DNA of 64,000 nt, from the NCBI GenBank assembly GCA_037379345.1, contig CM074514.1:8680001-8744000 (forward strand), in the 5' to 3' direction. Position 1 is the stretch's first letter, and every line of letters begins with the position of its first letter. Shown here one piece after another: positions 26,314 to 50,420 of the stretch. The position numbers were made by a program, and so were the translations under genes. Source of the stretch: Perna viridis (taxonomy: Eukaryota). Below the pieces are notes generated by a model, which did not search any database, had not been told where the DNA came from, and saw only the letters and a program-made list of their open reading frames with translations.

Positions 26314-26470
26314 ACTTACCAAATCACCCTTGACTTCATTCAAACAGGTTTTGATAGGTTCTTCTCGGTTTAATTTAACGGCCTATTCGTGGTATGTTTA
26401 CAATTCTCCTGCCGAATCAGTAACATCGATTATCACCATAATTTGATTGGCTAAAAATCTGTTGGGCGGT
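26314..26470 (-). promoter_or_regulatory. Candidate promoter and non-coding first exon of the large FN3-like gene
   Basis: GTAAGT donor at 26319-26314, with a CCAAT box (gattgg, about 26445) and a GC box (gggcgg, about 26464) upstream; the ATG exon has an acceptor and so needs a 5' UTR exon. Confidence 0.3.
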
Positions 26471-26875: not shown

Positions 26876-27085
26876 TCGTCTGTACACAGGAAATAGGTAC
26901 CAGGACTGGTTTTCGGTATATTTAATAGATGATTACCGTTAGTGTACGGTGATTCCAGTTTATAGCTACTATACACTATACAGTACCAACGTGGCTATAA
27001 ACTGGAACCACCGTACACCTAGGGAAAGAATGAATTGAAAAAACAGAAAACCAGTCCTGGTACCTATTTTCTGTGTACAGATGAT
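26876..27085. repeat. About 210-bp interrupted palindrome with two pairs of arms
   Basis: Outer arms 26876-26914 and 27046-27085; inner arms 26942-26966 and 26994-27018. Confidence 0.9.
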
Positions 27086-28559
27086 ACACGGTTCAAAATG
27101 GCGGAGCTTTCAATCTTCATTTGTAACTCGAGTTGCTTTTTACTTTTGCTTTATCTTAAAAAATGCATTCGACAATTATCAATGTGCTGGTAAAGGCAAA
27201 CATTCAAGGCTAATTGTTAGTCGTCTGGACTACATGTGTATGTTAATTTTGAAGCGGCTTCAGACATTGTGTTGTACAGAAATCGTGTGAAAGTAAGCGA
27301 GGACCATGTAAAAATAAATGTCCAGTCCTTGCAAGTGACGGAAACAAATATTCATGCAGAAAGTAGGTTGAAAATTAATATTAATAAATTTATTCCCCTC
27401 CAAATTATATCAAATGGTCATACCCAAACTGTAACCCCAGATTGAGCGAATCAATAAAAAATGATAAACATTAACTTTCAAAAATTATTTTTTGTTGCAA
27501 AAGATCGGAACATGTTCAGAAAAGTTCAAAGAATTACACCCTTAGACAAAGAAATGGTTCAAGTACAAAGTATTATGAGCCCCTTGCCCTCAGTTCTAGA
27601 TACTGTTTTGTAAAGGAACCTAATATTTGAACTTGATAAATTAACATAACCCATTAAGGATGAATACAGTAGTCATTGCAAACAACAAAATACTAAAGAT
27701 AAGTGTTCCACCCTTGGTTTCTCTTCACACTTTCTCTTAAATTTTGTCCCAGTTGTCTGAAATTCCATTTAAAGTTTTTTGTTTTTTTTTTAATTTGTAC
27801 AACAATTCTTTCCCAAATTCCACATTATTCCTGACCAACCCAGGTGAAAAAACCACAATGAACAGACACACCAACATACAAATGTATTGAATCATCAAGA
27901 CTGAAAACAAGAAGTGAAAATCATTAGTAACAATTTGGTCTCCTGAAGAAATAAACAGAAAGACAACAAATTTAACCCCCAAAATCTAAAAAACTTTCAT
28001 GTGCCCTTTCCTGCACCACACTTCAATTTGATACGGAAATCCCGACTGGAAAATTGGTCATTTGCCAGATCCCTTTTCATTTTAATCCCAAAGCCCCGTT
28101 ACAAGGTATAACTTTGATCCCAGTGTCCAGAAAACCATAAACCATACTACCATTATTACACTCAACAGTACAATCATCACATCCAGTAGTACTCTCAATA
28201 CACTCAGTTCTCCCTTAACTTGCCACGCATTTATATTATCATACTCCTCACTTGTCTACCACCACATACTATAGAATTATCACGACACTTTGATAGTGGT
28301 ACAGTACAGAAAAGGTGTAGTAAAATCACCACATTGAGTAGTACTATCACATCACTCAGAAGCACAAACACTAAATTCAGTTTTACATCATTACACTTAG
28401 CAGATTCACCACCATCAATAGTACTATTACATCACTAATTGGTAAATTAAACTCAATAGTACCATCACTTAATCGTCCCAACAATACAAGTAGAATTAAC
28501 ATTGCTCCCAGTGGTACCATCATTACACTCAGTTGTCCGTTACAATTCACAACACTCAA

Positions 28560-29174
28560 TAGCACTTTCACCACACTAAGTAGAATCATCAGCAAGATAA
28601 GTAATACAATCACCACACTGCATAGTACAATGACCACACTCATTATTGCAATCACCACACTCATTATTGCAATCACCACACTCATTATTCACCACACTCA
28701 TTAGTACAATCACAACACTCATTATTGCAATCACCACACTCATAAGTACAATCACCACACTCATTATTGCAATCACCACACTCATTAGTACAATCACTAC
28801 ACTAATTATTGCAATCACCACACTCATTATTGCAATCACCACACTCATTAGTACAATCACCACACTCATTATTGCAATCACCACACTCATTAGTACAATC
28901 ACTACACTCATTATTGCAATCACCACACTCATTAGTACAATCACCACACTCATTACTGCAATCAACACACTGCGTAGTACAATCACCACACTCATTATTG
29001 CAATCACCACACTCATTATTGCAATCACACACTCATTATTGCAATCACCACACTGCGTAGTACAATCACCACACTTATTACTGCAATCACCACACTGCGT
29101 AGTACAATCACCACACTCATTAGTACAATCACCACACTGCGTAGTACAATCACCACACTCATTAGTACAATCAC
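28560..29174 (+). repeat. Minisatellite A, 21-bp unit AATCACCACACTCATTATTGC / ...TAGTAC
   Basis: Roughly 26 clear units, decaying leftward to about 28140. Confidence 0.95.
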
Positions 29175-30049
29175 CCGCCAGCTGGAGAGGGATTAATATA
29201 AGTTGTATAACTGGTTTCCCAATCCAGGATAAACAAATAAATTTAAACTAAGGTATTTATAAATTAATGATTATCATCTTTGTAATGTTTCTTTTGTTGA
29301 CTGGTATATTTTTATATATTATATATAGTTTTAAAAGGGTTTTATCCATGAACAATATTTATTCATTAAATGTAGAAATTTGCTATTATTAGTCAAATGT
29401 TAACTGTCCTATTTATTTTTAACTCAGATGTAACCTATGCCGTGAAAGGAGATCAACTGATTTTATATGATGACACTTCGGTGACATTTAAGAACCACGA
29501 TTTCTTACAGAAACGCTTTATTTCGGTAATTATAATTTTTGTCTCACATATAGTGTATTGTTAGTGGCTTCAGTTACTTAATTCATTGAAAAAGTTACAG
29601 TACAAATCCTTCTTGTTACTAACATGAACATAATTACCATATAAATATGAAATTATAGTATGGAAATGAATAGAACTAATTTAATTACCATTACTTTTTT
29701 GATAATTCTTCAACCTTACTTATGCAAAAACTAAACAATAAAACTATAATTTCATCCTTTCTCCATAGAATTTCTTTTTTGATGACGGAAAGCATATCTG
29801 TTTGATTTTTGGACTTTGATAATTATTTTTGTAAATTAACTAAGAATTCTAATTTCAATTTAATTTCCTATATTGTCAATTAATATGTACCTTTTCTTTT
29901 TTAGGTCAATGGATACATTTACCTTTATGAAAAAGAGACATAAATGAAAGTGCTGAAATTAAGTTATTACCCACACAAGAAAATTATAGTACTTTAGTGT
30001 TACATGTTAATGGAAAAATTGTAATATTTAAAACAACAACACTTTAAAT

Positions 30050-30165
30050 ATGAAAATGGGGGTCTGGTATGATTGTCAATGAGACAGTCATCCATAAATG
30101 TTGAAACGTCAAATACGAAGTAATTAAGCTTCTACAGGTCACCGTACGGCCTTCAACAATGGATA
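30050..30165 (-). repeat. Fragment of an abundant interspersed repeat (ggtatgattgtcaatgagaca...ggtcaccgtacggccttcaacaatg)
   Basis: Related copies at 37100-37240 (+) and 61830-62060. Confidence 0.6.
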
Positions 30166-32009
30166 ACTTCTAGTATCACTTTATGCTGGTCTACTAGTTT
30201 TGCCAGCCAGGCGGGCGTCATCAGGACAATTTTATACAAGAATATTTCCCCTGAAGTACTGAAACTGGCATCAGTTTGATGACATCACAATTAACAATTG
30301 TTATTGTTAACAACATGTATAGTTTGTTAAAGTCATTGGAACAATAAGTGAAATTATAAAGGTTATATGAAGGTAAGACAAACAATCACATAAGAGTAGG
30401 CTGTCAGTTTAAATATATTTAAACACATTTTTTATGTAGTTCTTGAGATTATGAAAGAAGCAATTTTGTCAATAAAAGCATAGTATTGTTTAGTTCATTC
30501 ATATAAATAATTGAGTATCATGTGATTCCTAATGGAACACCACTTCATTGAAAATCCATACCATCCCATCTGTCTTCTCTCTGTTAGATACAGCCTCCAG
30601 TTGCGTCAGGAAAATGGACGCTGTCTACGACCTTCATCTTAAACATAAACAACTATGTTTAACATTAGAAAGTTTGCTTAAATGTCCCACATTATTGGTT
30701 TATGTTTGGCATCTGGGAACAACTATGCATGCACTCTATCCATAATTGCTCTAAAAAAGTTGACCAAACATCTCTGGTTCATCAGTTGATAAAAGGAAAC
30801 ATTTTACAGTCATGATGACAGTTATACAACTTCTTATGCTGAATTTACAATCCATGATATGAAGGTCACTGAGAGTGGTATACAGTTTGTAGTGAACAGC
30901 TATAAAGATCAGGGTGACATTTTGTTGTTAAAACAGTTCACAATGTTAGACTCTGATAAATATGATTTTGCACTGTAGCGATATTTCGTGTATAAATGCG
31001 TTATTATCTTGATATATTTTATTGTTGAAATACTCCATGTTAATTTTATGAAGATTTGTCTTATTTAGTATTATTTTACATCCATTTTCACATGGATCAT
31101 ACAGGATTATCTTGTTTGCTAATTTGCTGTTAAAATCACTTTTATCTATTGTATATTTTACAGAAAGCAAGATATTTGTCAAGTATTTGGATTAACAAAA
31201 AGTGCTAATTCCTTTCTTTATTTGTAATTCTCAAATTGTCACTCATTGATGTCAGATTTTTGTGTCAAAGCCTGTTTGTGATAAAAAAAAACCCTTCAGG
31301 GCAGATTATTTGGACAAAATCTATATTGTTTAATTAATTATCAGTATTTTGTAATATTTTACATATTTTATAGGATTTTACATAATAGCTTAAAAACATA
31401 GGATTAATTTGTAACCGTGGTACTCTATATAGTTATGAAATATTGTTTAGTTTAGCAGTTTTTATCCTGAGAGTCTTGTGCGCATCAAATACTATGTAGT
31501 TTAAATATCTGCACCGTGGTGGTGCCCACACTGTGCATCACTTAAGATTATGACTTGTATGTTTTTCATCTCTATGTTTTGAATGTGACATTTAATATGT
31601 TGATTGAACTTGTACATAATAAATTTGTACATATCGTACTTGGACTTTATATATGGAATTTACCCAGCTCTACCGGTGTTTTAAAGTTGCTCTACCAATT
31701 TACTGGACTAAGTTAATAGTTAATTCCACAAGTATGACTCAGGGTGAGGATGCAATATGATGAACATTCCACACTGTACCGAGATGCTCCTTACCCTGGT
31801 CATATAAGTATAAGCTAATTACCTATTAGTTATCAATTGAGAAGCCATCATATCATTTACACTAATATATACAGGTTTATCTATAACATGCATAGACTTA
31901 ATTTTGAAAAATATAAACTTTTGTGTGTTTACTTTTGACACATTGAAGTAGGTGCCAAATAAACCAAAATAAAACTACAACAAAAATGACCCAATTGATG
32001 GTATTTTCG

Positions 32010-33190
32010 TCATGGTGATAGATGTAAGGTTATGTTGCTTGGTGCACATATCATGGTGATAAATATTTAGGTCCTGGTGATAAATATTTAGATCCTGATG
32101 AATACACATATAATGGTGATAGATGTTTAGATCATGGTGATAGATATTTAGATCATGGAGATAGATATTAAGGTCCTGGTGATAGATATTTAGATCATGG
32201 TGATAGATGTTTAGGTCATGGTGATAGATATTTAGGTCATGGTGATAGATATTTAGGTCATGGTGATAGATATTTAGGTCATGGTGATAGATATTTAGAT
32301 CATGGTGATAGATGTTTAGGTCATGGTGATAAATATTTAGGTCATGGTGATAGATGTTTAGATCATGGTGATAGATGTTTAGGTCATGGTGATAGATATT
32401 TAGGTCCTGGTGATAGATATTTAGGTCATGGTGATAGATGTTTAGGACATGGTGATAGATGATTAGATCATGATGATCGATATTTAGGTCATGGTGATAG
32501 ATATTTAGATCCTGGTGATAGATATTTAGGTCCTGGTGATAGATATTTAGATCATCGTGATAGATATTAAGGTCCTGGTGATAGATATTTAGGTCATGGT
32601 GATAGATATTTAGATCATGGTGATAGATATTAAGGTCATGGTGATAGATATTTAGATCATGGTGATAGATATTAAGGTCATGGTGATAGATATTTAGGTC
32701 ATGGTGATAGATATTTAGATCATGGTGATAGATATTAAGGTCATGTGATAGATATTTAGATCATGGTGATAGATATTAAGGCCATGGTGATAGGGTACAA
32801 AACTCAAGGTGATTGATATTTAGATAACAGTGATAGATAATTAGATCATGGTATTAGATATTTAGGTCCTGGTGATAGATATTTAGATCATGGTGATAGA
32901 TATTTAGATCATGGTGATAGATATTAAGGTCATGGTGATAGGGTACAAAACTCAAGGTGATTGATATTTAGATAACAGTGATAGATAATTAGATCATGGT
33001 GATAGATATTTAGGTCCTGGTGATAGATATTTAGATCATGGTGATAGATATTAAGGTCCTGGTGATAGGGTACAAAACTCAAGGTGATTGATATTTAGAT
33101 AACAGTGATAGATATTTAGGTCCTGGTGATAGATTCAGAGTTTATGGTGATATATGATTAGGTCATGGTGATGAATATACAACTCATGAT
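32010..33190 (+). repeat. Minisatellite B, 21-bp unit ATGGTGATAGATATTTAGGTC
   Basis: Roughly 55 units, with higher-order variant blocks in the right third. Confidence 0.95.
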
Positions 33191-35479
33191 GATATATATT
33201 CATTAAATTTCAACATTATATAGACGTGTATGTCAGATTCTTTCATAATATAACACAATCCATAGTGACAAGGATTGCATTAAGTTCAAAAATTGATATG
33301 GAGAAAATGTGCATTAAACACAATATATATGCATTTAATGCTTATAATTATAATACTTATTATGCATGCATGTGATCACTTTAACAGAGGCATCAGGGAG
33401 ATTTATCTTTGATATCAAGGAAATTTAAGAAAAACATATGTAATATACAAAGAAGATCTTTTTTCTATCAGGCATATTTGCAGAATTGGACCGTTTTTGG
33501 TCAAAAGTAAGAGTAAATTTCGGGGAGTCTCCCTGGTGATCAGGAGGTATCACATGTATGATCATGCAGGGGAGCAACACTAAAATAGATCATTGCTCTG
33601 CATATTAAGATATAGCGAAATCGTTCAAGGAGTTCAGCTGCTGACCATTAAATAATTGTTTTAATTCTACACAATAATTAGAAACAATATATGTTGGTTG
33701 GTTGATATGGTTTTACCCTATTGTGGCTCTAGTGTTACACAAAGGAAATAAAATTAAAGGTACAGATTGTACGAATAGCAACATCACTATTTGTAGAAAC
33801 TGTGTGTTCGAGGAACTGATACCATAATGAAAAGAGAGTTGATCAACATGAAATGGTGATGTATTGACGCTAGACCAATAAGGTCAACATCTTTACCTAG
33901 ACTCGACAAAATCAGCAAGGTGGCATCTCTGCACTCTGTACTAGAATGGTATCCCGTATTATATAGTCCGACCAACTCGGCATTCAAGATTGGTCTTTAT
34001 GATTAGACCAGTATCAAATAAAATAATTTTGATTACTAAAATCCTTAATCTTAATTCCTCAATCGCCCTCCTTGTTTTTGGACATTATTTTCTGTTTTTG
34101 TTTTTTATGTTTTGTAGTATGGGAAGGTTTTGAAAGGAATTTTAGGATTTAATATTACATGCCTGTTAACCAATAGGATCCTCTTAGTAAGGAAAAACCA
34201 TACAAAATAAAAATAATTAATGAACATCTTTAATAATTCACTTGAAATCCCTTATAATTTAGAATGCGCAAAATACAGAAAATGCCTCACTTGCGAACGC
34301 TTAAATATATACAAAAGGATGCTGTCATTTTGAAAACATGTTCATTAAATTTCAACATTATATTTAAACTTCTATGTCAGATTCTATCATAATAAAGCAA
34401 GGCCTCTCTACATTTCGTAAAAAAAATGACGAAATAATCATAAATAACAATGCTAGTCATTCAAATATGACCAATATCTAATAAAATCCTAAAATTATTG
34501 AAACTCTCTGTATATATCTTGTGAAGAATACCACCTAATTGAACCACATTAACTATTCATGTCAATAGATTAAAATTTATATTAAGCAAACCCTCGTCAA
34601 ATCATAATTCCACTTATTTTCTGTTATAAGCTTGCATGAAGCATTTCACAGCAACTTGCAGTTTGATTCATTGTTAAGTAGTCTAGATTCCAAGTGCCTG
34701 TATATTTCGATGGGACCAACTGAAAGTTTTTCCCGGAATGGTAGATGTTCTCAGTGTTCCTAAAAGACCCCTAGATAGTCCTATGTTGCTTCCATGTCTC
34801 TGCTATTGTTTCTTTGACATGACGCTTATTTCCATTCTTCTTGCTAACCTAGATATAAATCCTCCTTATTCATATTGCATGGAAACCAGTCACTCAGACA
34901 CTGTATCGCAAGCTTACGGAACAGCATTAATACTTTGTGCAGTCAGTTTGCGTTACAAATAGCGAACGAGAATGGAAATGTGGATTATGTCAAAGATATT
35001 TTGCATTACAAATACGCAAACTGGATAATACATCTTGATATATATCTTCAGAAAAGTTGTATCTTGAGAAAATTCCATCAGGCAAGTCATATTTGGCAAT
35101 ATGTATTCATGATCAGATTCAGAACATAATCATTAATAGGTGCTGTAAATAATCAGGTTGGATAAGCTTCTTGTGATGTTGTTGTAGTTCATCGTTTTTG
35201 CTTATTTAACTATGTCTCCCCAGAGACATAAAACCATGGTTTTATATGTTTCTGGTCTCCCAAACGAAGTTCAGAGACATATATTTTAGTATGTTTTTTT
35301 CTTTCCTTATAATATTGATATAAGCAAATGACGACACTTTTGAGATAACATTATTAGTTTAAGCAGAGACATATGTATATGTCTCTGGTTTATGGCTTAG
35401 CATATTTACAAAAAAAATCAGGTTAGTTAAAGATACTACCCCGATGCATTCACGTACGAAGATTGGCCATCATGTCGTA

Positions 35480-37240
35480 CATCCTATTGTGACTGTGCTG
35501 TATCTAAATTTTAAGAACTTATTGTCAATTATTGTATTAAAGGAAAAGAACACAACTGTGTAATCTACTTTTCGAGTGTAAAAAAATCACTTGTAGTTTG
35601 GGACAAATTACACCGCTTTCTATAAATCATTTGAAACTGTTGATAGCTATGACTTCTCTACTCTCTATACTACTTTCACATTACTTTATAACATAAAGCA
35701 GACATTTTCATATTTTATCGAATTGTGTTTCAAAAAAGCAGATTACAAATATACCTGCTATTATAGAGAAAGGTCTTTTTTCTCCAACGACAATGATAGA
35801 TATAAGAACTATACTTACTGGACCTGTGAGGATATGATTACTAGTAATTCTGTTAATTTCGTATGAATTCCTATGGGCATAAACTATGCTTATTTAATAG
35901 ACGATTTGTTCCTTTACCGTTATGAATCTAAGTTTATGGCCAAACTAGAAAATGATTCATCTAAATCGTATATGCTAGACAAATTAAACAATACCTACCA
36001 TTACCTTGACGATATCTTTTCATCAAATAACCCTGATTTTTATAAATACAACACCGAAATTTATCCAATGGAATTAACTTTGAATAAAACCAACACTGAC
36101 AGTCTCAATTGTTCATTTTTTGGATTTAGATGTTTCTATTATACAAGATAAAATAAGAACCAGATTTACGACAAGCGGGATGATTTCTCATTCATTTGGC
36201 TCCTTCTTACGGTGTATACACTTCTACATGTATAATGGTGCACTTCTATACTTATTCGGTGTATACATTTCTATACTTGTTCGGTATGCCTGTGTTTGCA
36301 GTGGTAGAATGCAATTTCTGTATCATCAAAAAATTATTTAGTCAAAGATTTCGTTACAATAAGTTGTTTAAAACGTTTACTAACTCCTGTCATAAATATA
36401 AAACTTTGGCATCTAAATATGGACGTATATGTCATAATCCTACTTTTTATGAATTTTATGGAAACGTTAATAAAGCTTGTAAATTTAAACTGGATCCACA
36501 TGGTCTTAAAAGTAATCTCAATAAACTCACCCGTAAAAGAGATCCTCATAACATTATTGTCAAAACTTTAAATATGGTTTTTATTGGTATGTATATTGAC
36601 TTTCTCATTAACAGCCTACAAATTGACTAAACATTACATTTTTTTATTTGCCTGTTTCCTGTCCACCGATTTTTTACATTAGCATTTGTACAACCCAATT
36701 TTTTCAGATTTACTTTGATGTTTCGCACTAAATCCAGTGGACTTCTTTTGATTGATGTCGAAATACAGGAAAACTTCTTATTAGTTGTTTTCGGGTTTTA
36801 AATTAGCAGACAGGAACTGCGAGTACTCTTTCGAGGTCTGTCATGTACTTCTTGTTGTACCGTGTTTATTGTTATTGTATTTGTTTTCTGTTGATCTCAA
36901 GAGTTAAACCCATTTCAACTGATTTTTATAGTTTGTCTTATTGTTGTGTTGTCACACCAGTGTCCCTGGTTAGGGGAGGGTTGAGCGGTCACTAAGGGGT
37001 TTGTGGTTGTTGTTGTTTATTTGTTTCTTGTTATTAGTTTTGCATTATTTCAATACATTAGGTCAATGGTTGTATTTCATGAATATTGATACATTTTGTA
37101 TTTTTGGGGCCTTTTACAGCTTCCTTTGTGGTATGTATCATGATCCATTGTTGAAAGCCAAAATGTGTGACCTGTAGAAGTTTTTTGTCTAATTTTGGTG
37201 GGTTGCTGTCTCATGGACAATCATACCAAATCACCTTCAT
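35480..37240 (+). mobile_element. Decayed Penelope-like retroelement (RT, thumb region, 3' UTR repeat)
   Basis: Frameshifted RT motifs DSYDFSTLYT, IPMGINYA..DLFLYRYE, YHYLDD, IYPMELTLNKT, DLDVSI, YDKRDDFSF, GVYISILVRYA. Confidence 0.85.
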
Positions 37241-38341
37241 ATAAATTGTGTAGTTGCTGTGATATTAAATTGTGTTAACCTTGAATGTGCTAATAGTCCA
37301 TCCACAACTTCTTAAAGCAAATGAAAATGGGAAGTATCATTTTACACAGGCATAGCTACCAAATAATTTGGACTAAAATCAGCTGCTGTCACAAAACAAC
37401 TTGCTCCATTCTCACAGAATGCATCGCTCACTGCACAACAATCACCACAGTCTGCATAATGATCTCCATAGTGAAAACTACAGTGTTAAAGTCATTTACA
37501 AGTGGATTTATTTCTTCTTTATAAGCAAAACAAAGGGTTAAGTCGGGAAGGTGTCTCAAGGGTATGAGGATCTTAAGTCTTTGTTTTGTATAGACCTTCA
37601 AATATAGATTGAAAATAACCAATAAAAAAGGCAGGGTCAAAGTTTATTTATACAAAATAATTTTATTCCTATCTAAAATTCTAAACTATGATTTTGATTC
37701 AACATTTGATTCAATATTTCCTATTTAATTGTATAGAAATATAACTTATACAGAGCAAATCTATATAACAAATACCCAAGAAATGAATGATTCATAATAA
37801 CACTCAGATGGTATATACCTTTAATAGATTAATACAATAAATCATGTTTTAACTATTAAAAAATAAAATAAAATAATAACTTCTACTGTCCTGTGCAAAA
37901 ATAAAACGTTACTTTCAAAATGTGAAAGGTTCCAATTGACAAGCTTTTTGTTTCCAAAATTAGAAATTTACTTGTTCCAAAAAGTTTTTAGATGGAACAT
38001 CAAGATAAAGTTTAACTAAGTTCATGAAAGCATCTAAAAGTTTGCTTCTCAGAGAAACGTTTAAAAAAATGAATAATTTAATTAAATCATTCAACTCTCT
38101 TACTTCAAAAAGCAAGCTTGCTTATCAATCAGATGGTTGAATAAAGTCCGACAAATCAAAGTTAACGCTGTCCATTTACAATAAGCTGATCAATAACAGC
38201 CCTTGAAAAGGGGCTTTCCCATACACATGCATATCAACCAACGCAAAATAGCCCCAGAAAAGGGGACTTTCCATCCCACCTAATGTGCATTCAAGCACTG
38301 TGCTTTTGATTAAACTAGCAAATCAATAATTTATCGATAAT

Positions 38342-41300
38342 TCATAAATAGTTTTTTACAAAATATATAGTGCAGACCTTTTCCCCTCTTGTTTTGTCCA
38401 TCACATACTCTCCTCTTTGACATAACTTTGGCAAGTTTGGAAAGAATGCCAAGGAATCTTCTTTAACGCTACCAGAGGTGACATGTCCAGATGAGCCAGT
38501 AAAAGATTTCCTTGTTATGTTGCATATCCTTTCCAATATAACTTTCAGAAAAGAGGGCACATGTCGCAGCCTACATAGCAAATCAAATAAAACAGGCATT
38601 TTCAATTGCAACTGTTTCATCAAATTTCCATTTTGGATGAATTTTGAGTCCCTTAAAACATCTTCCACCATGTTCAAATATTGCAATGGAAATGCTGCAC
38701 AAACTGGAGAATTACAGGCAATCATCCTGATTAAGTCCGCATATTCCTCAGGACATTCATGAGTACAGCCTATAAAAAACATGTCATAAATTTATTTTGA
38801 TAAATATCTTTATCAAGCTTTAGGACACAACCTAGAAAACCATACCCATAGCCAGAATTTTTCAAATGGGGTTTTAAACATGTCTAGGGGGGGTTATATT
38901 GTCTAATTCGGCTTTTGAACAGTTGGAGGAACATAACTGTGTCAAAGTATTTGAATGACCTGTTGATTAAACCTAGTTTTTGATTTGCCTTATCAACTTC
39001 CTTATCAATATCTTCTTGAAAATTTAACTTTTTGTCAATTATAATTCTTGGGTCTTTCTCTGTAATGACTTTTAGAATTGTAGAATTTCCCATTCTGTAC
39101 GAGTTTCTTCCCCTAGGTGCATGTGTCTACACTTGGATTGGTTAAACTTGACATAAAGGGTTGATTAAGTGGAATGCAATGTAATGTCTTTTTCCACAAC
39201 ATATTGGAATAAAGTTATTCTAAGTCTCATGTCAAATATCCTTTAATACCAAACCTGTTTTCTGTAAATAATCAAAGAAATCATTCAAGGCTGGGGCATG
39301 CTGTGATGCTAGTTTCTTCATCTGATGAAACTCCTCAGTTGTAAATTTTGCTTTCTGCTTGGAAAATCTGTAGACTATATCTCTTAAAGGCTTATGCCTT
39401 ATAAAAATTCTGTCTTGGTGCTTACTGAAAAATAAATAGATAATAATAGATGTAGAATAAGTGTATGTGACACAACTCACACAAAGCAGCAGCATTTAAA
39501 AATCTAGCAGCCTTTAAAGTAGCCCACCGACGCTGCTTGCCATCCTCCCATTGGCCCTAGGATAAAATAAAATACATATGATTCGAACAGATCCTAGCAT
39601 CACCATTGAAAGACCCCTCTGGACATTTAGAAAACAAGGTAAATCTGCGAGTTAATGCTCACTACTGATACCCCTGTTTATAAAATAAGTCTTTCATATC
39701 CAAAATATTCAGCAGAAACTAAGTCGTTAAAATACAGGCATGAGATTGCTATACACCATAGAAAATTATAGGATAAAGCAATATGCAAAATATCAGTTAT
39801 CGGCTGCAAGTGGTTGCTGAAAAAACTTTGACAGAAAGGTTTTTACAGGCGAACAGACATATGGACATATGGACAAACAATAATAAGGGTAAAACAGTAT
39901 ACCCAAACTTTTTCAATACAGGTGTCTTCATTTTAGAAGAAAGGAAAAGGCATTGATGAAAACGTAAAGATGTTCAATTGATTTAAGAAGATTGAAAGTG
40001 CATTCCCTGTCACAATTAAAAAAAAAATTGTCGTTTTTTTTTCAAGAAGTGCATTCATCCCAAAGAATATAAGCAAAAATGTTTTCTACTTACTTACTAA
40101 ACATTTGCTAAGTATTTCAATTTGTAACAATACAGTCAAACCTGTATATAAAGGTCACCCTTGGGCCGAAGAAAAACTGACCTTATAAGACAGGTGACCT
40201 TTGAATACAGGTTCAAAATACAAAGATATAGTTACAAAGGGAAAAATTTAAGTGACCTGATAAGACAGGTTTTCGCTGAAAAGAGGTGACCTTTAGAGCA
40301 GGTTTGACTGTACTTTATTTTCCTTTCAGTGGGTATTTTAAAAAGTAAGGCTTTGTGTACTGACAGCTAATGCACCTTTGATGTAAGAATGGTAATGGTA
40401 AGAATTATAAACCTTCCATGAAGCCTTTCTGCATTGTTTTCATCACTGATATTTTCATGACTTAAAAACTGTTTTTGAAATCCAAGGCTTGTTCCGTCCA
40501 TGACCAACATCTTAGGAGAAGTTCCACATGATGGATGGTTGCAAATGAAGTCGGCCTTGAAATCAATATCCAAAAGACCCATGTAGCTATACCAAGACTG
40601 CCGAAAGAAGTTATATGGAAACAACTTGCTAAACTCTTGATTTCCTCCATCCCTTTGGTGATTCTCCCAAACTTTATAAAATCTGAACATGGTACATCTG
40701 AAAAACAAATAAAATAAGTACTTAATATGCTAGCTCACAGGAATTTACAATTCGTTATCAATCGATGATTTGATATATACTAGTATGTGCCTCTACCTGG
40801 ATTATAGACATGTAATGTCTAATACTTTGATGTACTGAGGATTTGTCATGGTCATTCATTCAGCTGTTAGCTGCATTTTAAAACATCCTTATCTTTAACA
40901 ATGTTTAACAGAATGAATGGGATAGACTTAGATGGTGATTGTACTCAGACTATGTGCCTCTCTGGATGGAAATTGAGATAAATTGTTACTTTGCATTATT
41001 GACATTGATGAAGGCAATTAAAATAGATTTTTTGTTATACTATGATTAGGCTATATGGGTATTGCCTAAAATTCACCTGAACAAGTGTCCACTCTGAATG
41101 CATAAAAGGCCATTTCTGAAGCAACCTTTGGAGAAAACAGTTGATCAATTTAAATGAACCTATTTTAAAATTAAATTGACAATTTGAATAGGGTATTATC
41201 CCTTGTAAGAGGTGTAAGGTAACCTGACAGTTTATTGTAAATGCTGTAAAATATACAAAGAGTTTATCTAGTCCTTTAAATAAAATAATTACCCAGAAAG

Positions 41301-44300
41301 TAGATACTGAAACATGAAATCCCGAAGAACCTCATAATGGACCAGATAAATCCCCATATTCAGAATGCAGTCACTACTGCCGTCATAATAAGATGTTTTC
41401 CCACAAGAGGGCTCTGTGCATTTCCGTGAAAAAGCTGAAAATAAAACCTTAAAAATAAATGTCACATATTCCCTCACCCCATTTAGACAATCATCATTTT
41501 TTGTCAGTTATCCTGTAATATCAGGAACTGTTCTCTAATAGCAGAATTTTCCTAACTATCTCTTTAAAAAATATTTTACAAATAAGGGTGTTTTAAAGTT
41601 CAAACTAATCTACACAGGCAGATATAGCAGGCACATTCAATATTCTTTCCTTTTTAAATATTATCAAAGCCTTTGACTCTCGTGCTTGAGTTGTATGCGA
41701 TTATTTATTTATGAGTTTTGGAAAGTGTGTTGGAAAGATCCTGTTTACAGCTTTCCAACATTCAAAATTCTGTTGAATCACTTATCTTGTACATTTGGCT
41801 AATATCTGTTGAGGTTCTGATTCATTTCACTATTTTTGGCTATGGATGTAATTAGATATTATGAAAGTCTAACTGGTCTTCCACATTTTAGGCCTCTAGC
41901 GTATCTGATGAAGGTTAATCCAGAAAAGGAGAATGTGGGTGGTGTCTTTTTGACATATTTGCAGAAAATAAAATATTTTGAAATTCAAAGAAAAAGTCAT
42001 GTAGTCAACCTAGTAATAAAGGATGAGTGTCAATAAGAGGTGAATTTGGCCCAAAATTAAGACTATGTCATACAACCCTATTTTTTTCTGAAATATTATT
42101 TCTATCAATGTCTTTCAATTATTTGAATTCATAAACATCTAAATTATATGAGTTCCATAAAAAACACATGTTGAAATTGCGCTTTTAATGTGAAATGTGC
42201 TGATTTTTCTTAAAAATCTAAAAATTTCATATGGTTTTCATTCAAAACGAAAGTGGCCGCATGTGAACAACAGAAAAATAGTTTGCAGAAAGTTTTATTA
42301 TTATAATATCTTTTATGCCTTCAAATATTTTCCTGTTGTTTCGATGCGGCCATTGTTAAAAGTAAGAAAATTGTTATAAAAATCTTTGATTTAGACGAAA
42401 ATTTGCATATTTTGACGTCATAAAGCAGTTTTATGGCGTCATATTTGTAAAACCTTAATCTTATACTGACAAAATGATGTTATATATGTAAGAGTAGCTA
42501 TCTAGCAATGTAAATATTTATTTAAACACCAACTAATCAGAAAAGTAATTTTAAGCAAAGGTTTGGGGCCAATAATGGGGCTTATTGACCCTCATCCTTT
42601 GTTCTAAATTTCAAGAATACATGTATTACAATATGTAAAAAAAGTTACCTACTTTGCACATCAAGGCAGTCATATCTGGTTAACAGTTTGGACACTGGTT
42701 CCTTGATGAACTCTTCAGGTAATCCACTGCCACACTCTACACACCTTTGTTGATGGTCAAACAACTGGTAAGATCCATCAACAAGACAAGAATTTTGAAT
42801 AAAAGGAGTCTTTATTTTATCAGTCATGGCCCTGGTGAGGATGAATGGTGTCTTTTTTGTTGATAGACATTTCAAGATACTAGGGTTTCTTTTTTGGTAT
42901 TTTTCCAATTTTCCAACTATGCTGTCAACAATTTCTGGTAATTCCAAGTCCTCATATTTTCTAAGAAGGTTGTCTACATGATTTGTGTGGATGCAGTCTT
43001 TGGATTTACAAAAACAACAAGTCATCTGCCCAAACAAAATTTTAACAACAGAAATGTTCGAATTGCAATCAACAACATAATGGTCGTCGAGGAAGGGAAT
43101 TTCACAAATATCACTCATCTGAAATATGAGTTAACATTGATAAGCTAAAATATAAATGTGATTTAAAGTTTTCATTTTTCATTAAAATATAAAACATATT
43201 CGACTCTTTATTGTTAGCACAGGTTTCATAACCACTATTTGTATCCTGCCTTTTGCTGCCACTAGTATTCCACATCTTCAGATATCACTTAAGCTTTCCA
43301 ACAAAAGTTTTGCCTTGCAGCAATGTCAATAATTACCAAATAATGTTGATTATACTTAAGACAATAAGGATAAAACATCTAGCAATCCATTTCTATTTCT
43401 AAATAAAATTTGAAAAGAATCATTAAAATCAGGAATATGTTTAGGAAACATGATGCCCCATCTTACAAAATGTTAGAATAACTAAACTATAGGTAAACTT
43501 GAGTAATACCATCCCTTTTTTATATGATCATTCATCCACAACATTAATGAGGCCGTCATTTTTTTTATGGTGATTTTTTTTATTCATACCCTTATGCATA
43601 TGTGTATAAAGATTCATGACAATCAGATACTCCCATCATGGAAAAACTACAAAACAAATGTACCTTCAACCTGTAGGTAAACCTAAGTACAACAACCCCC
43701 CTTTTTTATCAATAAACCATGAAGTTGTCGAGGCAAGCAAATGTGATGATTTTTGTTTTATGCTATTATGATGCATATGTGCATGGGGTTTCTTGATGAT
43801 AAGATACTTGATCCTGAACCTGATCTGGGATGGACAAACAGATGGATGGAGAGACAGACGGAAGGATGGACAAACAGACCAGAACATTATATGCCCTTTC
43901 TATTTCTTGACGGGGCATAAAAAACATTATTAAACATAAGGAAATTTTCTAACTCAAATTTGATGAATACTATGTTTTTACATGCTGTACTTACATTTAA
44001 ATCTGATTCTTCCATTCTACTCTTACTGTAAACATGGTCAATATCTAAGAAATAATGAAATAAAATATAATGAATGTTACGAATGAATTCAATGATAATC
44101 ATTGACTAAAATCAATCACAATTGATTATAAACTATCATCATCAAGGACTATAACGCAATCACCATGGACTATAAACCAATCACCATGGACTGTAACCCA
44201 ATCACCATTGACTATAACCCAAACACCATGGACTATAAACCAATCACCATGGACAATAAACCAATTACCATGGAAAATAAACCAATCACCATGGACTATA

Positions 44301-47300
44301 AACCAATCACCATGGACCATAACCCAATCACCATGGACAATAAACCAATCACCATGGACTATAACCCAAACACCATGGACTATAACCCAATCACCATGGA
44401 CAATAAACCAATCACCATGGACTATAAACCAATCACCATGGACTATAAACCAATCACCATGGACTGTAACCCAATCACCATGGACTATTAACCATTCCAA
44501 ATAGTACATGTGTAGTAGAAGAATTAGAAGTATGATATCAAAATCTTATTTTTACAAATTTATATTATATGGTGTTTGATTACTAACAACATTAAATAAT
44601 TATTTTCTCTGTCCCTTTTAAATAAACTATATATTTAATGTTATAAATCCCCATAAACAAGAATAAGTATGGATTCTTTTACATACTTCACAGCAATTGT
44701 ATCTTTACATATACTGTGGTTTCATTATATTTTGTAGGGTATCAATTTTTGTGGTTTTTTCTGGGTGTCACTGATCCACGAAAAAGGAAATTTGACATTA
44801 CTCTCAGTCTGTATGCTATTGACTGCAGAACCATACATTCAAGAATCAACAAAGTGATCCTCTCTTATCAAGCCACAAATATTAGTACTAACAAAAATAC
44901 ATGAAACTACAGTACTTAAATTCTTAGTTGATATAAATTACCTAGAATATCTTCATCAACTTCTGTGCCCATCAAAATGTTGTAGTACACATGTTTAATA
45001 ATCATTATGTGGAAACAGGGAGGGAACATTTCATCAATATCTGAAAATTAAGAATATCTACGTTTAAATACTAACAATCAAAGATAGAAATAAAATAACC
45101 TGATTCATTACAAGTTAACTACAGGTTGCCTTTATAATGTAATTATTATGCCCTTGTGACGACTTGTTGGGGGAGACATTAAAGCGGCTCTATCTAAGAT
45201 TTTGAAAAAAATATTTTTTGTATAAAATTAATCTGCAAAGTTAAAATATACATGACTGTATTGCTATAAACACCAAACTGTAAAATAAATATCGTTGGAA
45301 TAATATTAAATCAGCAACATAACACATGTAAACATTATTGGCTTGCAAGCCTTTAATTTAAACTGATAAATTCCCGTTTATTTCCGTATGCACACGACCT
45401 TAGTGTGAACCCTGTCGACTGAGCATATGCACGGTTTAACTTCTGAAAACAAACATTCCAACACAATGAACGGATGGTATATATTCATTTTAATAAGCTC
45501 TCTAGCCTTTTCAATTAAATTGGAATAATTAGTAGGTAAACAGAAGAAAGTCTCCATGAATTCAATACACGTGCTTATCTCCGAATCCATTTTTTGTTTA
45601 CTTTTGAATGGGTCATTATCAGGTCAAATGCGATTCGGCAATCTTCGACGCCACATACGGAAACTAATTTGCTGACCTTCATCAATAGGATGATAATAAA
45701 ATTCTGACGATTTGAGTGGTAATTATCCACTTGTTATTCATAATTATGTAACAAACGCTACTCAGGTGTTCATTTTAGTACTGTATTCATCTAATTAACG
45801 TGTTTCGCATGTAAACAAAAATGATGATTATCTTAGATAATGCCCCTTTAAGTTTTACCCCTATCGATCCGTCTGTATGTCAGTCCAAACAAATTTCCTT
45901 TAAGCTTTTCTTAGAAACAGTACATGATAATGATTTGAACTTTTGTACGATCGTTCTGTAAATGTGACTTTCAGACACCTACTTCCTATTTAGGGCCGGG
46001 CCAATATGAAAGTTTCCATGAATTGAAAATTTCTGTGCAGCTTATCTGAAAAACCATACATAACAATGGTTTGAGACTGGATACGACATTTCATTAATAC
46101 AAACTGTGCATCCTTTTCAGATCTGTTGGGCCCCTACTTCCCATTTGGACAGTAAGGGCATCTGTGTCCTATGGACACATTCCTCCATTTTTTCAATAGA
46201 TACTCCTCACCATATTGCAATGATGTCAACTTCTGGTCAACAAAATTTTTTTTTAGCATTACTGTCTAAGTTGCTCTAAAGAATTGTATGAACCATAAAT
46301 GTTCTTAATTTGAAAAAAAAACAAATATTGAGCAAAACAATGCCAGGAAAATATTTTTTAAAGTTTGCATAATACTTTGTCAACCCTGAATCAAGTTAGA
46401 ATATGGGTATCTAACTGGTGGCTCAGCTATTTGAACATTTAACATAAAATCAATTTATTTACAATCTAATAGAATCTGTATCCTTTTAATAAGGTTTGTT
46501 CTATACAATAAAATGTTATGATGAATATACCTTCTTTGATATCTCCTGACATATTATCCAAATAATTCCTCCTGATATCATTGCACGTACATGAGAAACC
46601 ATGAGAAGTCCGCATCACAATCTGTGGCCTTTTCTGGAAATAAACAAAGAAGTAAAAATTAATTAGAATTAGTAAAAAAAAATTCACTATAGAATTAAAT
46701 GCAGATTTTGTAAGTTTCAAGCGATATGAAAGACAGTGACGAAACACATTTTGCATGAAGCGCGGAAGCGCTTCTTGCTAAAAATGTGCCAAGTCTTACA
46801 AAACTTGCAAAAACTGCATTTAATACTTATAATTACATATTTAAATGAGTCAAATAGTTTATTAACAAGTTTTTAATGAGAAATTTTAATTCTAAATTAA
46901 GCGTGTAGTAATATTGTTACTATCACGTGGATGCCACGCGCGTGAAAATAGTCACTTTTTTCATGTGATATGAAAACAGGTAACCAAATCACATGATACA
47001 TGTCTCGACCAATGACATAACGGAATTTAAATGAAATATTGACACACTGTAATTATTTCAATTTAATGAGAGGCTAATAGGTGCCTGAATTATCAAATCT
47101 GCTTTCGTTGTATACCGAGACTTCTGATGTCATGTGAATCCTTCATGCAGATCTACATATGATGAACTTCGTTTATATTAGATTCATCAAAATCTATCAA
47201 GCCGATCAGGCAAAGTTGCACCTACAAGATATGTGGCCAGATGGACAGACAGGGTGATTCCAATATACCACAAAACCCCGTTTGTGGGGTTAAAAAACAA

Positions 47301-48769
47301 TTAACTTTTGATTTATAAAGTGTTCCCATACCTGATAACTGCAATCATTCTTTTGATGTACATGTACATGTACATGTATGTAGTAAAATATTAGTAGTAG
47401 TTCTTCAATTTTAAATCAAACATATTGCATGTGTATCAACATGTATTCATAGGATAAAATTGAAACAATTTTTTTTCTTGTCAGTCTGTATTATTATCGA
47501 TTTCCATGGATTGCAGATAACAAATGTGTATCAGATAAATCAACTTAGCTACTGATGATGAAAAAATAAATACATAACGATGATAATACAATAATCATAG
47601 CATAGTGAGAGCACAACTCTTATAATACATACCTGTAGAATTTTCTTATCTGAATCAAAGTCAAGAACAACAAAGATGTCTTTTTTGCTAGTTACAACCA
47701 TATATCCAGGTATACCAAGAACACCACTTTTATACGTCTCAAAAGCATCTGCTTTAGACTGATAAACAGAGGTTTGAACTCCACTTGAAGAAGGCTCAAT
47801 CTAAAAAAGGAATTTAGATCAAGTTATCATATTCATTTAAACAAATTGCTTTAAACTCATGTCATTTATTTGATATAGCTTTGTTGTGTATGGTAAAAAA
47901 TAAAAAAGTTTTTATTTTATACATAACTGATATCAATCGATTACATTTTTTTCTCAACCTTAAAAAAGGCCAGTCAATTAATTGATTCATCAGAAATTAT
48001 AAACAAAGTAAAGATGTAGCAGTCAAGAATTGAAATAAGTTTCAATCATATCTTTTTTTGATTTGGCATGAAAAAAAATTGGTTAATGTATGATCTCTTT
48101 TAAAATGCCTGTTTCATATCAGTACCATTGCACAACCATATGTATGTGTGCAATTTTATTTGATTTAGCCTTCTCTTTTTACGTCATACACACTCAGTAA
48201 TCTTGTTACCTTATTTACAAAAGAAATATGAGGGAGATAAAATTACATTAAAATGGCTGCTGGTGGAATTCTCATGGGAATTTTCTTCTACTCTTCTTGT
48301 CTTTGGCTTAAAAGCACTATGTGAGTCGACATTCAATTTTCTCTTTTCTTTACCGTGCAGCTTGGAGTAATCCAATCCAATCTCATCCACTGTACTGTAG
48401 GGAGACTTGAAATCTGACAACTTGGCCTTTTCAACCAAAAAACATTAAGATGTATCATTATCACATTTTTATATCAAAATTACATAGTTTATAATTTACT
48501 TAAAAGTCATTAATTCTTAATGGGTATGTGTATAGCTTTTCACAATAAAATCAATCTAATCTTGACCTTGAAATTTGATTGATAAAAGATAGTCCATTAG
48601 TTGCAAAATAGTTAAAGTATATTCCATTAGTTATATTCTTACATTTTGTCTTATAAGATATTGAAAAATAATTTCAACTCAATTGTTTTGGCATTTACAT
48701 GCACAGTTACTTAAATCATCTACCAATTGGAAAAAAAAATTTACTGACCTTCTTCTTGTTCATTTCCAT
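38342..48769 (-). CDS. SWIM/CxC zinc-finger + KDZ (Kyakuja-Dileera-Zisupton)/HMGXB3-like transposase-type protein, 11 exons, about 700 aa, C-terminally truncated
   Basis: Phase-consistent GT-AG exons 48769-48749, 48426-48247, 47800-47633, 46633-46531, 45040-44942, 44044-43995, 43118-42653, 41434-41293, 40697-40413, 39424-39255, 38769-38342. Motifs FSCTC...PCFH, CCFC..DCIH, CVECG...RKC..SC..YDG, FICNHPSCGTSPKMLVMDGTSLG, GSKHQDRIFI, FFPNLPKLCQRGEY.MD. Confidence 0.7.
38890..39150 (-). mobile_element. CR1-type LINE RT C-terminal fragment in intron
   Basis: FNQSKCRHMHLG...EKD...IDKKLNFQEDI..VDKANQKLGLINRSFKYFD..FLQLFKS.IR. Confidence 0.8.
40133..40310. mobile_element. Tc1/mariner(pogo)-type MITE
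   Basis: TIRs CAGTCAAACCTG..TAAAGGTCACC and GGTGACCTTTA..CAGGTTTGACTG, flanked by TA on both sides. Confidence 0.9.
42018..42600. mobile_element. MITE with about 20-bp TIRs (Kolobok/piggyBac-like ends)
   Basis: aaaggatgagtgtcaataag ... cttattgaccctcatccttt. Confidence 0.75.
43750..43925 (+). mobile_element. HINE/DINE-like element end (GACG/GATG microsatellite, hairpin, ggggcataaaaa)
   Basis: tatgccc...ggggcata terminal stem after a tetranucleotide tract; similar ends near 39850-39925 and 47240-47295. Confidence 0.55.
44135..44490 (+). repeat. Minisatellite C, 21-bp unit CCAATCACCATGGACTATAAA
   Basis: Roughly 16 units in an intron of the KDZ-like gene. Confidence 0.95.
44712..44914. mobile_element. 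TA-flanked MITE
   Basis: tactgtggtttcat ... atgaaactacagta. Confidence 0.65.
45179..45851. mobile_element. TTAA-flanked MITE (Kolobok/piggyBac-like) nested in a HINE-like element
   Basis: ttaaagcggctctatctaagat ... atcttagataatgcccctttaa. Confidence 0.7.
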
Positions 48770-49089
48770 AGCTACAGTATAAAGTAAAATCAGTATTGAA
48801 GATTCTGTATCTAAAAAAATGATAATTATCACATCAATTATTCTTTGGCAAATAAAGATTGACTAAACACACAACAATGAGAACATGTAGTAAGCTTATA
48901 TCAAATTATCATTAATGTAATTAATTTCTGATATGCATAAACATGTATATTTTGGTGTTAAAGAATAATCTGAATGGTGACATAAGTAGAAAATGTGGCG
49001 ACAAACAAACAATAATAATTTTGTTGTAAAAAACATATGGTGAAACACTTATGAAGTGGGGTGATGTCCTGTGTGAAGTGTGGAAACAA

Positions 49090-50072
49090 ATAGCATGGTG
49101 ATACATGTGTAGTATGGTGATTGGAAAACATGTGTTTGTGGTGGTAAAATATCAAATAGCATGGTGATACATGTATTTAGTATTTAGTGTAGTGATATGA
49201 GACCATATGTTTGTCATGGTAAATTATCAAATAACATGGTGATACATGTATTTAGTGTAATGATATGAGAACATATGTTTGTGGTGGTAAAATATCAAAT
49301 AACATGGTGATACATGTATTTAGTGTGGTGATATGAGAACATATGTTTGTGGTGGTAATATCAAATAGCATGGTGATACATGTATTTAGTGTGGTGATAT
49401 GAGAACATGTTTGTCGTGGTAACATATCAAATACCATGGTGATACATGTATTTAGTGTGGTGATATGAGAACATATGTTTGTCATGGTAAAATATCAAAT
49501 AACATGGTGATACATGTACTTAGTGTGGTGATATGAGAACATATGTTTGTGGTGGTAAAATATCAAATAACATGGTGATACATGTACTTAGTGTGGTGAT
49601 ATGAGAACATATGTTTGTGGTGGTAAAATATCAAATAACATGGTGATACATGTATTTAGTGTGGTGATATGAGAACATATGTTTGTGGTGGTAAAATATC
49701 AAATAACATGGTGATACATGTATTTAGTGTGGTGATATGAGAACATATGTTTGTCATGGTAAAATATCAAATAACATGGTGATACATGTGTTTAGTGTGG
49801 TGATATGAGCACATATATTTGAGGTGGTAAAATATCAAATAGCATGGTGATACATGTATTTAGTATGGTGAGTTGAGAACATATGTTTGTGGTGGTAAAA
49901 TATCAAATAACATGGTGATACATGTATTTAGTGTGGTGATATGAAACATGTTTGTGGTGGTAATATCAAATAGCATGGTGATACATGTGTGTAGTGTGGT
50001 GATATGAGAATATATGTTTGTGGTGGTAAAATATAAAATAACATAGTGATACATGTATTTATTGTGGTGATA
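49090..50072 (+). repeat. Minisatellite D, 68-bp unit made of three TGGTG-containing subrepeats
   Basis: TTTAGTGTGGTGATATGAGAACATATGTTTGTGGTGGTAAAATATCAAATAACATGGTGATACATGTA, roughly 14 copies. Confidence 0.95.
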
Positions 50073-50099
50073 CAGATCTTGATTCGTATAACTTAACAA

Positions 50100-50420
50100 A
50101 TGTTTCGTTCGTTTATTCGTTTTCCGTTCGTTTGCTAATCGTTTTCCGTTCGTTCGTTTGTTCGTGTGATTGTTCGTTCGTTTGCGTCAATCGTTCGTTC
50201 GTTCGTTCGTTTACAGAAAAGAACGAACGCTGACCTGAATCGTTTATGGAAATTACCGGACGATTCCGAATGATTCCGAACGAACTGACGAACGCTCTGA
50301 TCGTTTACGGAAACACAAGAACGATTTCACATTACGAATATTGATGAAGAATGATATTATCGTTTCCGGAAATCAACGAAGGCCCAAACGAACGAACGAA
50401 CGAAGGAAACAAACAAATAG
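50100..50420. repeat. CpG-rich tract: (CGTT)n on the left switching to (AACG)n on the right
   Basis: Read directly from the sequence. Confidence 0.85.

Follow-up and report, generated by a model that had tools for sequence, protein, structure and literature searches.

A 24.8-kb insertion in the Perna viridis genome is probably a KDZ DNA transposon with four core-sharing minisatellites

A stretch of 64,000 nucleotides of Perna viridis DNA (assembly GCA_037379345.1, contig CM074514.1, positions 8,680,001 to 8,744,000 of the forward strand), hereafter called the window, contains an inserted element of 24,765 bp at positions 26388..51152, with its gene on the minus strand. The element is probably a single inserted copy of a cut-and-paste DNA transposon, very large in size, that belongs to the KDZ (Kyakuja-Dileera-Zisupton) superfamily. 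This reading is based upon empty sites at which the target is uninterrupted, a duplication of CCTATT at the borders, the reuse of one tip at a second locus on contig 13, and a copy on contig 15 in which the two tips are joined. From the homology of its exons to KDZ relatives, the element would be filed as a new variant within that superfamily. An earlier note on this DNA had proposed a giant intron-containing DNA transposon. The insertion, its target-site duplication (TSD), its gene and the absence of terminal inverted repeats (TIRs) all agree with that proposal, with the amendment that the copy in the assembly lacks the catalytic domain.

Ends, target site and copies of the element

A search with the right border indicated that the sequence immediately outside the element is a repeat with further copies. 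At least four copies of this repeat are present, three on contig 4 within about 120 kb and one on contig 1. Three paralogous copies were compared with the filled site, two of them on contig 4 at 8646 kb (L064) and 8589 kb (L065) and the third on contig 1 at 16.07 Mb (L063). The L064 sequence matches 25869-26387 and then directly 51153-51377, the L065 sequence matches 25878-26387 and then 51153-51650, and the L063 sequence matches the left flank to 26387 and then the right flank from 51153, on the opposite strand. Flank homology to the three paralogues breaks at 26387 and restarts at 51153, and because both flanks are halves of a repeat that is uninterrupted in these other copies, the copies represent empty sites. 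At each of them the left- and right-flank alignments overlap by six nucleotides, CCTATT. The three empty sites read AACGG CCTATT TTCCGAAC. The filled site reads AACGG CCTATT, followed by the 24,765 bp of the element, which on the plus strand begin with 5'-CGTGGTATG and end with ATATAGTTC-3', and then by CCTATT TTTCGAAC. Comparison of filled and empty sites gives a 6-bp TSD, with its left copy at 26382..26387 and its right copy at 51153..51158; the sole alternative reading is a TSD of 5 bp. The left part of the target repeat (25869-26387) is 99% identical to two contig 4 copies, and the right part (51153-51841) only 92-96%. Open reading frames (ORFs) in the flanks were looked up in other assemblies for an empty allele, and no record was found. 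The island had been placed by the earlier note at 26876-50420; a real insertion is present there, with borders that lie 488 bp further out on the left and 732 bp further out on the right. Other copies and empty sites had been called for to define ends and a TSD, and these were obtained (26388-51152, CCTATT). Shared boundaries, whose lack had been named as a reason to abandon the proposal, are clearly present.

Two further loci carry parts of the element. The fragment at C13:26550777-26550889 begins exactly at the nucleotide of the element's right tip, extends inward for 113 bp, has lost 19 nt internally, and is bracketed on both sides by AATAGT. The larger copy, at C15:9908052-9915592, consists of window positions 46911-51150 fused to 26389-29174, with 96.8% identity over both blocks and 99% identity in the unique left part. 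The tips meet there as ATATAGT/GGTATG (the slash marks the joint), 5 nt short of a perfect tip-to-tip junction, and no target duplication lies between them. One of the minisatellites described below, array D, is longer in this copy than in the element. The contig 15 copy may most simply be an excision product, circularised or joined at its ends, that integrated again after losing its middle; alternatively, it would derive from a tandem pair that later underwent deletions. Two general marks of cut-and-paste transposition, a TSD seen against an empty site and ends shared by more than one insertion, were both found.

The contig 15 copy sits amid many copies of one long interspersed element (LINE) with an RNase H and C-terminal ORF (L055:4783-8703, L056, L054 and C15:9.89-9.93 Mb). 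An origin of the copy by 3' transduction from this LINE is not supported, since every neighbouring LINE copy ends at one 3' position, 189 bp before the border. A reading of the joint as a bidirectional promoter or a product of palindrome breakage, which drew on CCAAT-like boxes in both inverted-repeat arms, was dropped after the empty sites and the TSD were found.

A spliced KDZ-family gene and its deletion allele

The element carries one intron-rich transposase gene of at least seven exons on the minus strand, which is transcribed and spliced. The exons were searched one by one, and protein relatives were drawn from a representative library at E<=0.001. Five exons are backed by RNA: a 2202-nt contig of run X10 skips the introns between them, with GT..AG ends, and raw stranded reads of run X21 repeat three of its splice joints. 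All first mates in X21 lie on the plus strand, as expected for RNA from the minus strand; contig depth does not measure expression, and X21 contributes 28 reads on the stretch. In the direction of transcription the RNA-backed exons begin with 42653..43118, which holds a SWIM-like CxCx4CxH motif, and continue with 41293..41434, which covers part of a CxC4-type cysteine cluster, and 40413..40697, which encodes HPSCG and LVMDGTSLGF; each of the three was also found by tblastn. The exon at 39254..39424, likewise matched by tblastn, is defined by the spliced joints 39424/40413 and 38768/39254 (GT..AG). The last exon, 38335..38768, is covered by record 2 of the X10 contigs, by X21 read joints, by its ORF and by a tblastn match to residues 488-618 of the relative P0004. 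Upstream of these, a 50-nt exon lies at 43995..44044: the piece of the RNA contig that continues beyond 43118 maps to 43995, and a ttcttag acceptor and a gtaagt donor are found there. Two probable upstream exons are proposed from homology to P0004, one at 44958..45044 (tblastn, residues 91-119, E 3e-4) and a weaker one at 46550..46621 (residues 62-85, E 0.004), both on the minus strand.

Assignment to the KDZ superfamily was made through relatives. The exons of the window are colinear with residues 62-618 of P0004, a protein of 775 residues. P0004 itself, P0054 and P0059, all relatives of full length, score above the Pfam threshold for KDZ; the relatives carry CxC4 together with KDZ. The exon region 40370-40708 has 253 relatives at the threshold given above and, in the same genome, five paralogues, all of them distant (about 40% identity); the exon region 42645-43118 is single copy in the genome. 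No useful match was returned by Pfam on single exons, which for CxC4 is because an intron splits the domain. Exons 41293-41434 and 40413-40697 together share 38-56% identity with the stretch called CxC4 by Pfam in P0027, P0054 and P0059, and by this alignment the cysteine cluster of CxC type that KDZ transposases have upstream of the catalytic domain is present. LVMDGTSLGF of exon 40413-40697 aligns with LLFDGTSLSF in P0004 and likely contains the first catalytic aspartate. An intron-containing KDZ-type gene with zinc modules had been proposed from the letters, and the relatives' domains and the spliced RNA agree with it.

The catalytic C-terminal part of this gene was removed in the assembly by a deletion whose joint lies at 38365..38369. 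At the joint the frame of the last exon enters foreign sequence and stops at 38342-38344. The last 160 residues of the relatives, which Pfam calls KDZ, were matched neither in the window nor in 50 kb examined on contig 15. An ENA contig, L058, is 99.7% identical to 39129-38370 and then continues the exon past 38370, coding SHPSLLPGTFTVFCPHG; its continuation, KHTGSHPSLLPGTFTVFCPHG, matches the relatives. The L058 residues SHPSLLPGTFTVFCPHG align with SHPSLLPGIFTVFCEHG near residue 625 of P0004, just upstream of the start of Pfam KDZ at 637. In DNA run X3, contigs branch at 38370 into 910 other letters, and on the left side of the joint the X5 and X10 sequences are continued past 38364 by other letters. 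The L058 continuation was searched for in the assembly and was not found. The X10 RNA contig spans the joint, so the deletion allele is transcribed. The haplotype in the assembly is a non-autonomous deletion allele, and un-deleted alleles exist in other samples of the species. The loss of the catalytic C-terminus accounts for the failure of Pfam PF18758 to match the window, and it leaves this copy unable to transpose on its own.

The intron between the last two exons holds, at 38887-39126 on the minus strand, a LINE-type reverse-transcriptase tail that is also present in L058.

Minisatellite arrays, arms and rival readings

Four minisatellite arrays in the element repeat the core ATCACCA or its complement TGGTGAT at a spacing of about 21 bp. 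Arrays in the 64-kb window were detected with Tandem Repeats Finder (TRF). Array A (28541-29175, core on the plus strand) has a period of 21 and 30.5 copies of AATCACCACACTCATTAGTAC; array B (32051-33200, minus strand) has a period of 21 and 54.8 copies of TATCACCATGACCTAAATATC, read on the minus strand; and array C (44100-44494, plus strand) has a period of 21 and 18.8 copies of AATCACCATGGACTATAAACC. Array D (49087-50072, minus strand) is built of about 14 copies of a 68-bp unit composed of core-bearing subunits of 23, 24 and 21 bp; TRF spans it at 49180-50072 with period 68 and 13.3 copies, and degenerate units begin at 49087. Besides these four, TRF over the window returned no array longer than 110 bp. 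ATCACCA occurs 114 times in the window, against 11.05 +/- 3.36 expected and a shuffle maximum of at most 20, and 112 of the 114 copies fall within 26432-51109. On the plus strand the core reads forward in A, reversed in B, forward in C and reversed in D. Exact cores are spaced mainly by 21 bp in A, B and C and by 21, 47 or 68 bp in D, where the 68-mer contains three core-like sites at 23, 24 and 21 bp. Array A and subunit D3 have ATCACCACACT in common, and arrays B and C share ATCACCATG with subunit D1. When the consensus units A, B, C, D1 and D3 were aligned on the core and read by eye, none of the 14 remaining positions was invariant. In the whole 723-Mb assembly, exact ATCACCA-N14-ATCACCA was found 188 times, against 21 for the reversed control; 65 of these phased pairs lie in the element and 35 in its partial copy on contig 15, together 100 of the 188. 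The four-array observation is confirmed far beyond chance. Nearly all that the earlier note had said of the arrays is borne out by these counts: the alternating orientation at about 21 bp, the sharing of ATCACCACACT by the inverted pair A and D and of ATCACCATG by B, C and D, and the lack of such arrays elsewhere in the window. The statement that the arrays enclose the KDZ-type gene needs correction, as array C sits in one of its introns.

The arrays form two nested inverted pairs within a larger symmetric layout, which reads tip, inverted repeat, A(+), B(-), gene, C(+), D(-), inverted repeat, tip. A and D are the outer arrays and B and C the inner ones, at roughly matching distances from their own tips (A 2.2 kb, D 1.1 kb, B 5.7 kb, C 6.7 kb). 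The inverted pair B and C is 64% identical over 431 nt, and the inverted pair A and D is 72-79% identical over 28-50 nt. Array C lies in the intron upstream of exon 43995-44044, 55 nt away from it, array D is found 5' of the mapped exons, and A and B follow the gene on the far side of its truncated 3' end. A search for inverted repeats found none at the tips. The first begins 31 and 30 nt inside them, as a 37-nt pair that is 89% complementary and contains TATCACCAY. Its left arm (26419..26455, plus strand, TATCACCAT) carries the core at 26432-26438 and occupies positions 32-68 from the tip, and its right arm (51086..51122, minus strand, TATCACCAC) carries the core at 51103-51109 and occupies positions 31-67. 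The core is offset by 43-44 nt inside both tips. When the two arms of the element were read from the tips, they aligned only at this 37-nt repeat and array to array. Subunit D1 matches the motif of the left arm at 17 of 22 nt and that of the right arm at 16 of 22. The inverted-repeat motif occurs five times in the entire genome and is absent outside the element's three loci, and the tips are absent from the other loci examined. The view that the element lacks long TIRs is upheld, the tips not being inverted repeats and the arrays forming two inverted pairs. A hairpin at 26872..27088 in the left arm, with 98-nt arms of 83% complementarity and a 21-nt loop, is conserved on contig 15 in the partial copy; either a miniature element nested in the arm or a structural component of the arm itself could account for it. 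Beside array D, a 45-bp repeat rich in (CGTT)n was noted at 50104-50213 and 50387-50417, with an inverted partner 180 bp off; the 5' region of the gene is presumed to lie there.

The distribution of related arrays was examined by DNA search. Arrays B and C are unique in the genome, and D is present only in the element and on contig 15. Arrays like A, at 72-77% identity, occur at no fewer than eight other loci, on contigs 7, 13, 10, 9 (twice), 3, 6 and 2, with array-to-array similarity only and no flank homology to the element. At most of these loci the A-like 21-mer is clustered with a 62-mer satellite and with a 32-mer containing TGTGGTGATAGATAT, often in inverted order with outer inverted repeats, in a foldback-like manner. 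The contig 7 cluster (L032/L033, C7:3.395-3.410 Mb) has the order 62(+) 21(+) .. 21(-) 32(-) 62(-), and the contig 10 cluster (L035, C10:10.40 Mb) has a 43-nt outer inverted repeat. Further foldback-like clusters were found on contig 13 (L034, C13:18.29 Mb), contig 9 (L036-L037), contig 3 (L038) and contig 2 (L040). Array B shares 13 nt, TGGTGATAGATAT, with the cluster 32-mer, and the A unit agrees with the dispersed 21-mer at 18 of 21 positions. The earlier idea had been said to fall if the arrays occurred independently of KDZ genes; they do so in the A family, and B, C and D were found only in the element or its copy.

Minisatellites were also found at other KDZ loci, both of the same genome and of other bivalves. 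Near KDZ exons of the same genome, a 32-mer is shared by the related loci L001:2080-2210 and L002:775-1065, and a 31-mer lies in L012:1260-1532. In GCA_902652985.1 a 4.6-kb array of 139 copies of a 33-mer (L060:7453-12032) lies across the start of a 15-kb intron-rich gene for a KDZ homologue (P0031). In GCA_021869535.1, given the source name Mytilus californianus, a 2.6-kb array of a 64-mer (L066:10524-13152) lies in the 5' part of another such gene (P0154). This 64-mer is homologous to the 62-mer of the Perna viridis genome (score 28, shuffle maximum 22). No significant similarity was found between the D, B and C units and the 62/64-mers or the 33-mer, which is from a scallop. An origin of array C as a splice-junction copy ('mirage') was rejected, as its unit does not match the junction of exon 43995-44044.

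The element inserted into one copy of an older repeat, of which 6 bp (CCTATT) were duplicated, and based upon the features above a mechanism can be proposed. The un-deleted transposase would recognise TATCACCAY in the subterminal repeat through its N-terminal zinc modules (the CxC4 region and the CxCx4CxH motif of exon 42653-43118); it would then cleave at the tips and integrate via 6-bp staggered cuts. The arrays would add many copies of the site, raise the local transposase concentration and help to pair the ends, as in the transposon Galileo discussed below. A role of the arrays as transposase-binding platforms is plausible, though rather less likely than not. It is a more doubtful proposition that a bivalve KDZ lineage replaced its TIRs by distributed TATCACCAY recognition, in which the zinc modules would read the motif at a fixed offset inside each tip and hundreds of times more in the helically phased arrays, with the foldback-like clusters as non-autonomous partners and the contig 15 copy as a re-entered circle.

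Several observations weigh against the element being a KDZ transposon with functional arrays. The TSD is 6 bp, not the published 7 bp (Kyakuja) or 8 bp (Zisupton, Dileera); the tips are CG..TC and not CA..TG, and there is no TIR, so that the ends do not have the form published for KDZ elements. PF18758 does not match the window, where the catalytic part is deleted; a genome scan with Pfam KDZ matched five other loci and not the element. The 723 Mb hold one full and two partial copies, which means that activity is low or recent. The A-like clusters lack KDZ coding sequence (in 10 kb examined, about 5 kb either way), the element's tips and the 37-nt inverted repeat. The arrays lie 1.1-7 kb from the tips, far beyond usual subterminal binding sites. 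Within them the core is barely better kept than the rest of the unit (0.94 versus 0.85-0.87 in A and B, 0.96 versus 0.91 in C), and much of this difference traces to a few higher-order variant positions. The signal of selection on the core within the arrays is weak and is confounded by these variants.

The main rival for the role of the arrays accepts a KDZ transposon and takes the arrays to be passenger minisatellites with no part in transposition, their core being shared by descent from a scattered array family; the chance that this is correct is close to even. Bivalve mobile elements readily grow arrays, and the inverted layout would go back to an ancient duplication of the arms in inverted orientation. 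The A-like 21-mers and the core-bearing 32-mer at eight or more loci without KDZ coding sequence speak for it, as do the sequence that B shares with the 32-mer, the closeness of the A unit to the dispersed 21-mer, the weak conservation of the core above background and the kilobases between arrays and tips. Set against this, unconstrained descent would not be expected to keep one contiguous block while none of the 14 non-core positions stayed common to all units. The core moreover lies at an equal offset inside both tips, within the sole inverted repeat near the ends, and more than half of the phased core pairs of the genome are in the element and its contig 15 copy.

It is unlikely that the element was mobilised in trans by another family with 6-bp TSDs (of hAT6, IS3EU or Polinton type), the KDZ gene being cargo or an older resident. 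The length of the TSD, tips unlike those of Kyakuja and the missing catalytic domain of the assembly copy are in its favour. However, the element contains no other transposase, polymerase or integrase frame, and its tips and inverted-repeat motif are confined to its three loci and so are not the ends of an abundant family. In addition, TSD lengths are known, to our knowledge, for only a few fungal and fish KDZ lineages. Very improbable is the last rival, a host locus with a domesticated KDZ-derived gene that was copied in a segmental duplication or inserted when extrachromosomal DNA was captured by end joining: it fits a gene that is single copy, intron-rich and expressed, an odd permuted fragment on contig 15, and joined tips that could be read as a palindromic bidirectional promoter until the empty sites emerged, but it is opposed by an exact 6-bp duplication at a site intact in three paralogues and by a second locus whose first nucleotide is the same as that of the tip and which has a 6-bp flanking repeat of its own, and end-joining capture does not make target duplications.

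Other features of the window were recorded. Between array B and the deletion joint, a frameshifted fragment on the plus strand (35597..36627), assembled from ORF pieces with YLDDIF and YGVYISILVRY, is reverse-transcriptase-like, and we take it to be, probably, the remnant of a nested retroelement. Pfam on this fragment gave nothing above threshold. Outside the element, a pair of 137-nt inverted repeats at 21467-21603 and 24213-24349, 85% complementary and 2.6 kb apart, may be another DNA transposon, and at 19399-19897 there is a dispersed repeat, of which contig 15 (9.894 Mb) and contig 10 carry copies with 86-90% identity.

Significance and comparison with known systems

If it is read correctly, the element offers a complete animal KDZ element with nucleotide-exact ends, a 6-bp TSD, no TIRs and a transcribed, multi-intron transposase gene, in a species in which natural alleles with and without the catalytic domain coexist. 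One motif beside both tips and in four phased arrays would make end finding and pairing by giant transposons without TIRs experimentally tractable. A dispersed family of core-sharing minisatellites in this bivalve may have had its origin in the element, and the contig 15 copy would be a naturally occurring case of transposon ends that were joined and then integrated anew into a chromosome.

Zisupton occurs in animals, its first description being from fish. It is mainly in fungi that KDZ elements have been resolved completely, down to their ends and TSDs, and Zisupton and Dileera have TIRs and 8-bp TSDs (PMC12730594). The element is related to these two through its transposase superfamily, as judged by Pfam on the full-length relatives, and is unlike them in having neither TIRs nor a TSD of that length. 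Kyakuja has no TIRs, CA..TG tips and 7-bp TSDs (PMC12730594; Kojima 2025). It resembles the element in the relatives of its KDZ-type transposase, the lack of TIRs and a short TSD (7 bp and 6 bp, respectively), and differs in its fungal host, its tips and the TSD length itself, the element being from a bivalve and ending in CG..TC. The element, unlike Kyakuja, is also 24.8 kb long, with an intron-rich 13-kb gene, a subterminal 37-nt inverted repeat and four core-sharing minisatellites. No TET/JBP partner gene was found in the element; the only Pfam Tet_JBP match, a weak one to the reverse-transcriptase-like fragment, is at chance level (E 0.024).

In CACTA elements, short motifs in inverted orientation in both subterminal regions are the binding sites of TnpA. 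The earlier note had drawn its analogy from this system, and CACTA/En-Spm elements are similar in their repeated inverted internal motifs; like them and like Galileo, the element may function through binding sites repeated in its interior. They are dissimilar in their CACTA tips, 3-bp TSD, unrelated transposase and motifs within a few hundred bp of the ends, none of which is seen in the element. With respect to Polinton/Maverick elements, which have 6-bp TSDs and lengths of 15-25 kb, no frames for a protein-primed polymerase B, a retroviral-type integrase or capsid proteins and no long TIRs were found in the element. The longest frames are the KDZ exons, besides frames of the arrays and one non-coding ORF of 152 aa outside the element (52082..52540). 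The foldback-like clusters of the same genome are like the element in their A-like 21-mer, their 32-mer with the ATCACCA core and their inverted orientation, and unlike it in their own outer inverted repeats and 62-mer satellite; they may be its non-autonomous partners, the donors of its arrays or unrelated to it.

The repetitive arms with inverted tandem repeats are also a likeness to Galileo/Foldback elements of the P superfamily. The THAP domain of Galileo recognises a site some 70 bp from the end, and the tandem repeats within the long TIRs are bound by it as well (PMC3688188; Marzo et al. 2013). The transposases are unrelated, with THAP and a P-type enzyme in Galileo and zinc modules and KDZ in the element. 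The arms of Galileo are true long TIRs, whereas the paired arrays of the element have little in common besides the core and are 1-7 kb away from the tips; the long TIRs of tandem repeats reaching the ends that define Foldback/Galileo were not found, the outer arrays starting 1.1 and 2.2 kb from the tips. With a proximal site located tens of bp from the end and repeated in its tandem arrays, Galileo provides the closest working model for the element.

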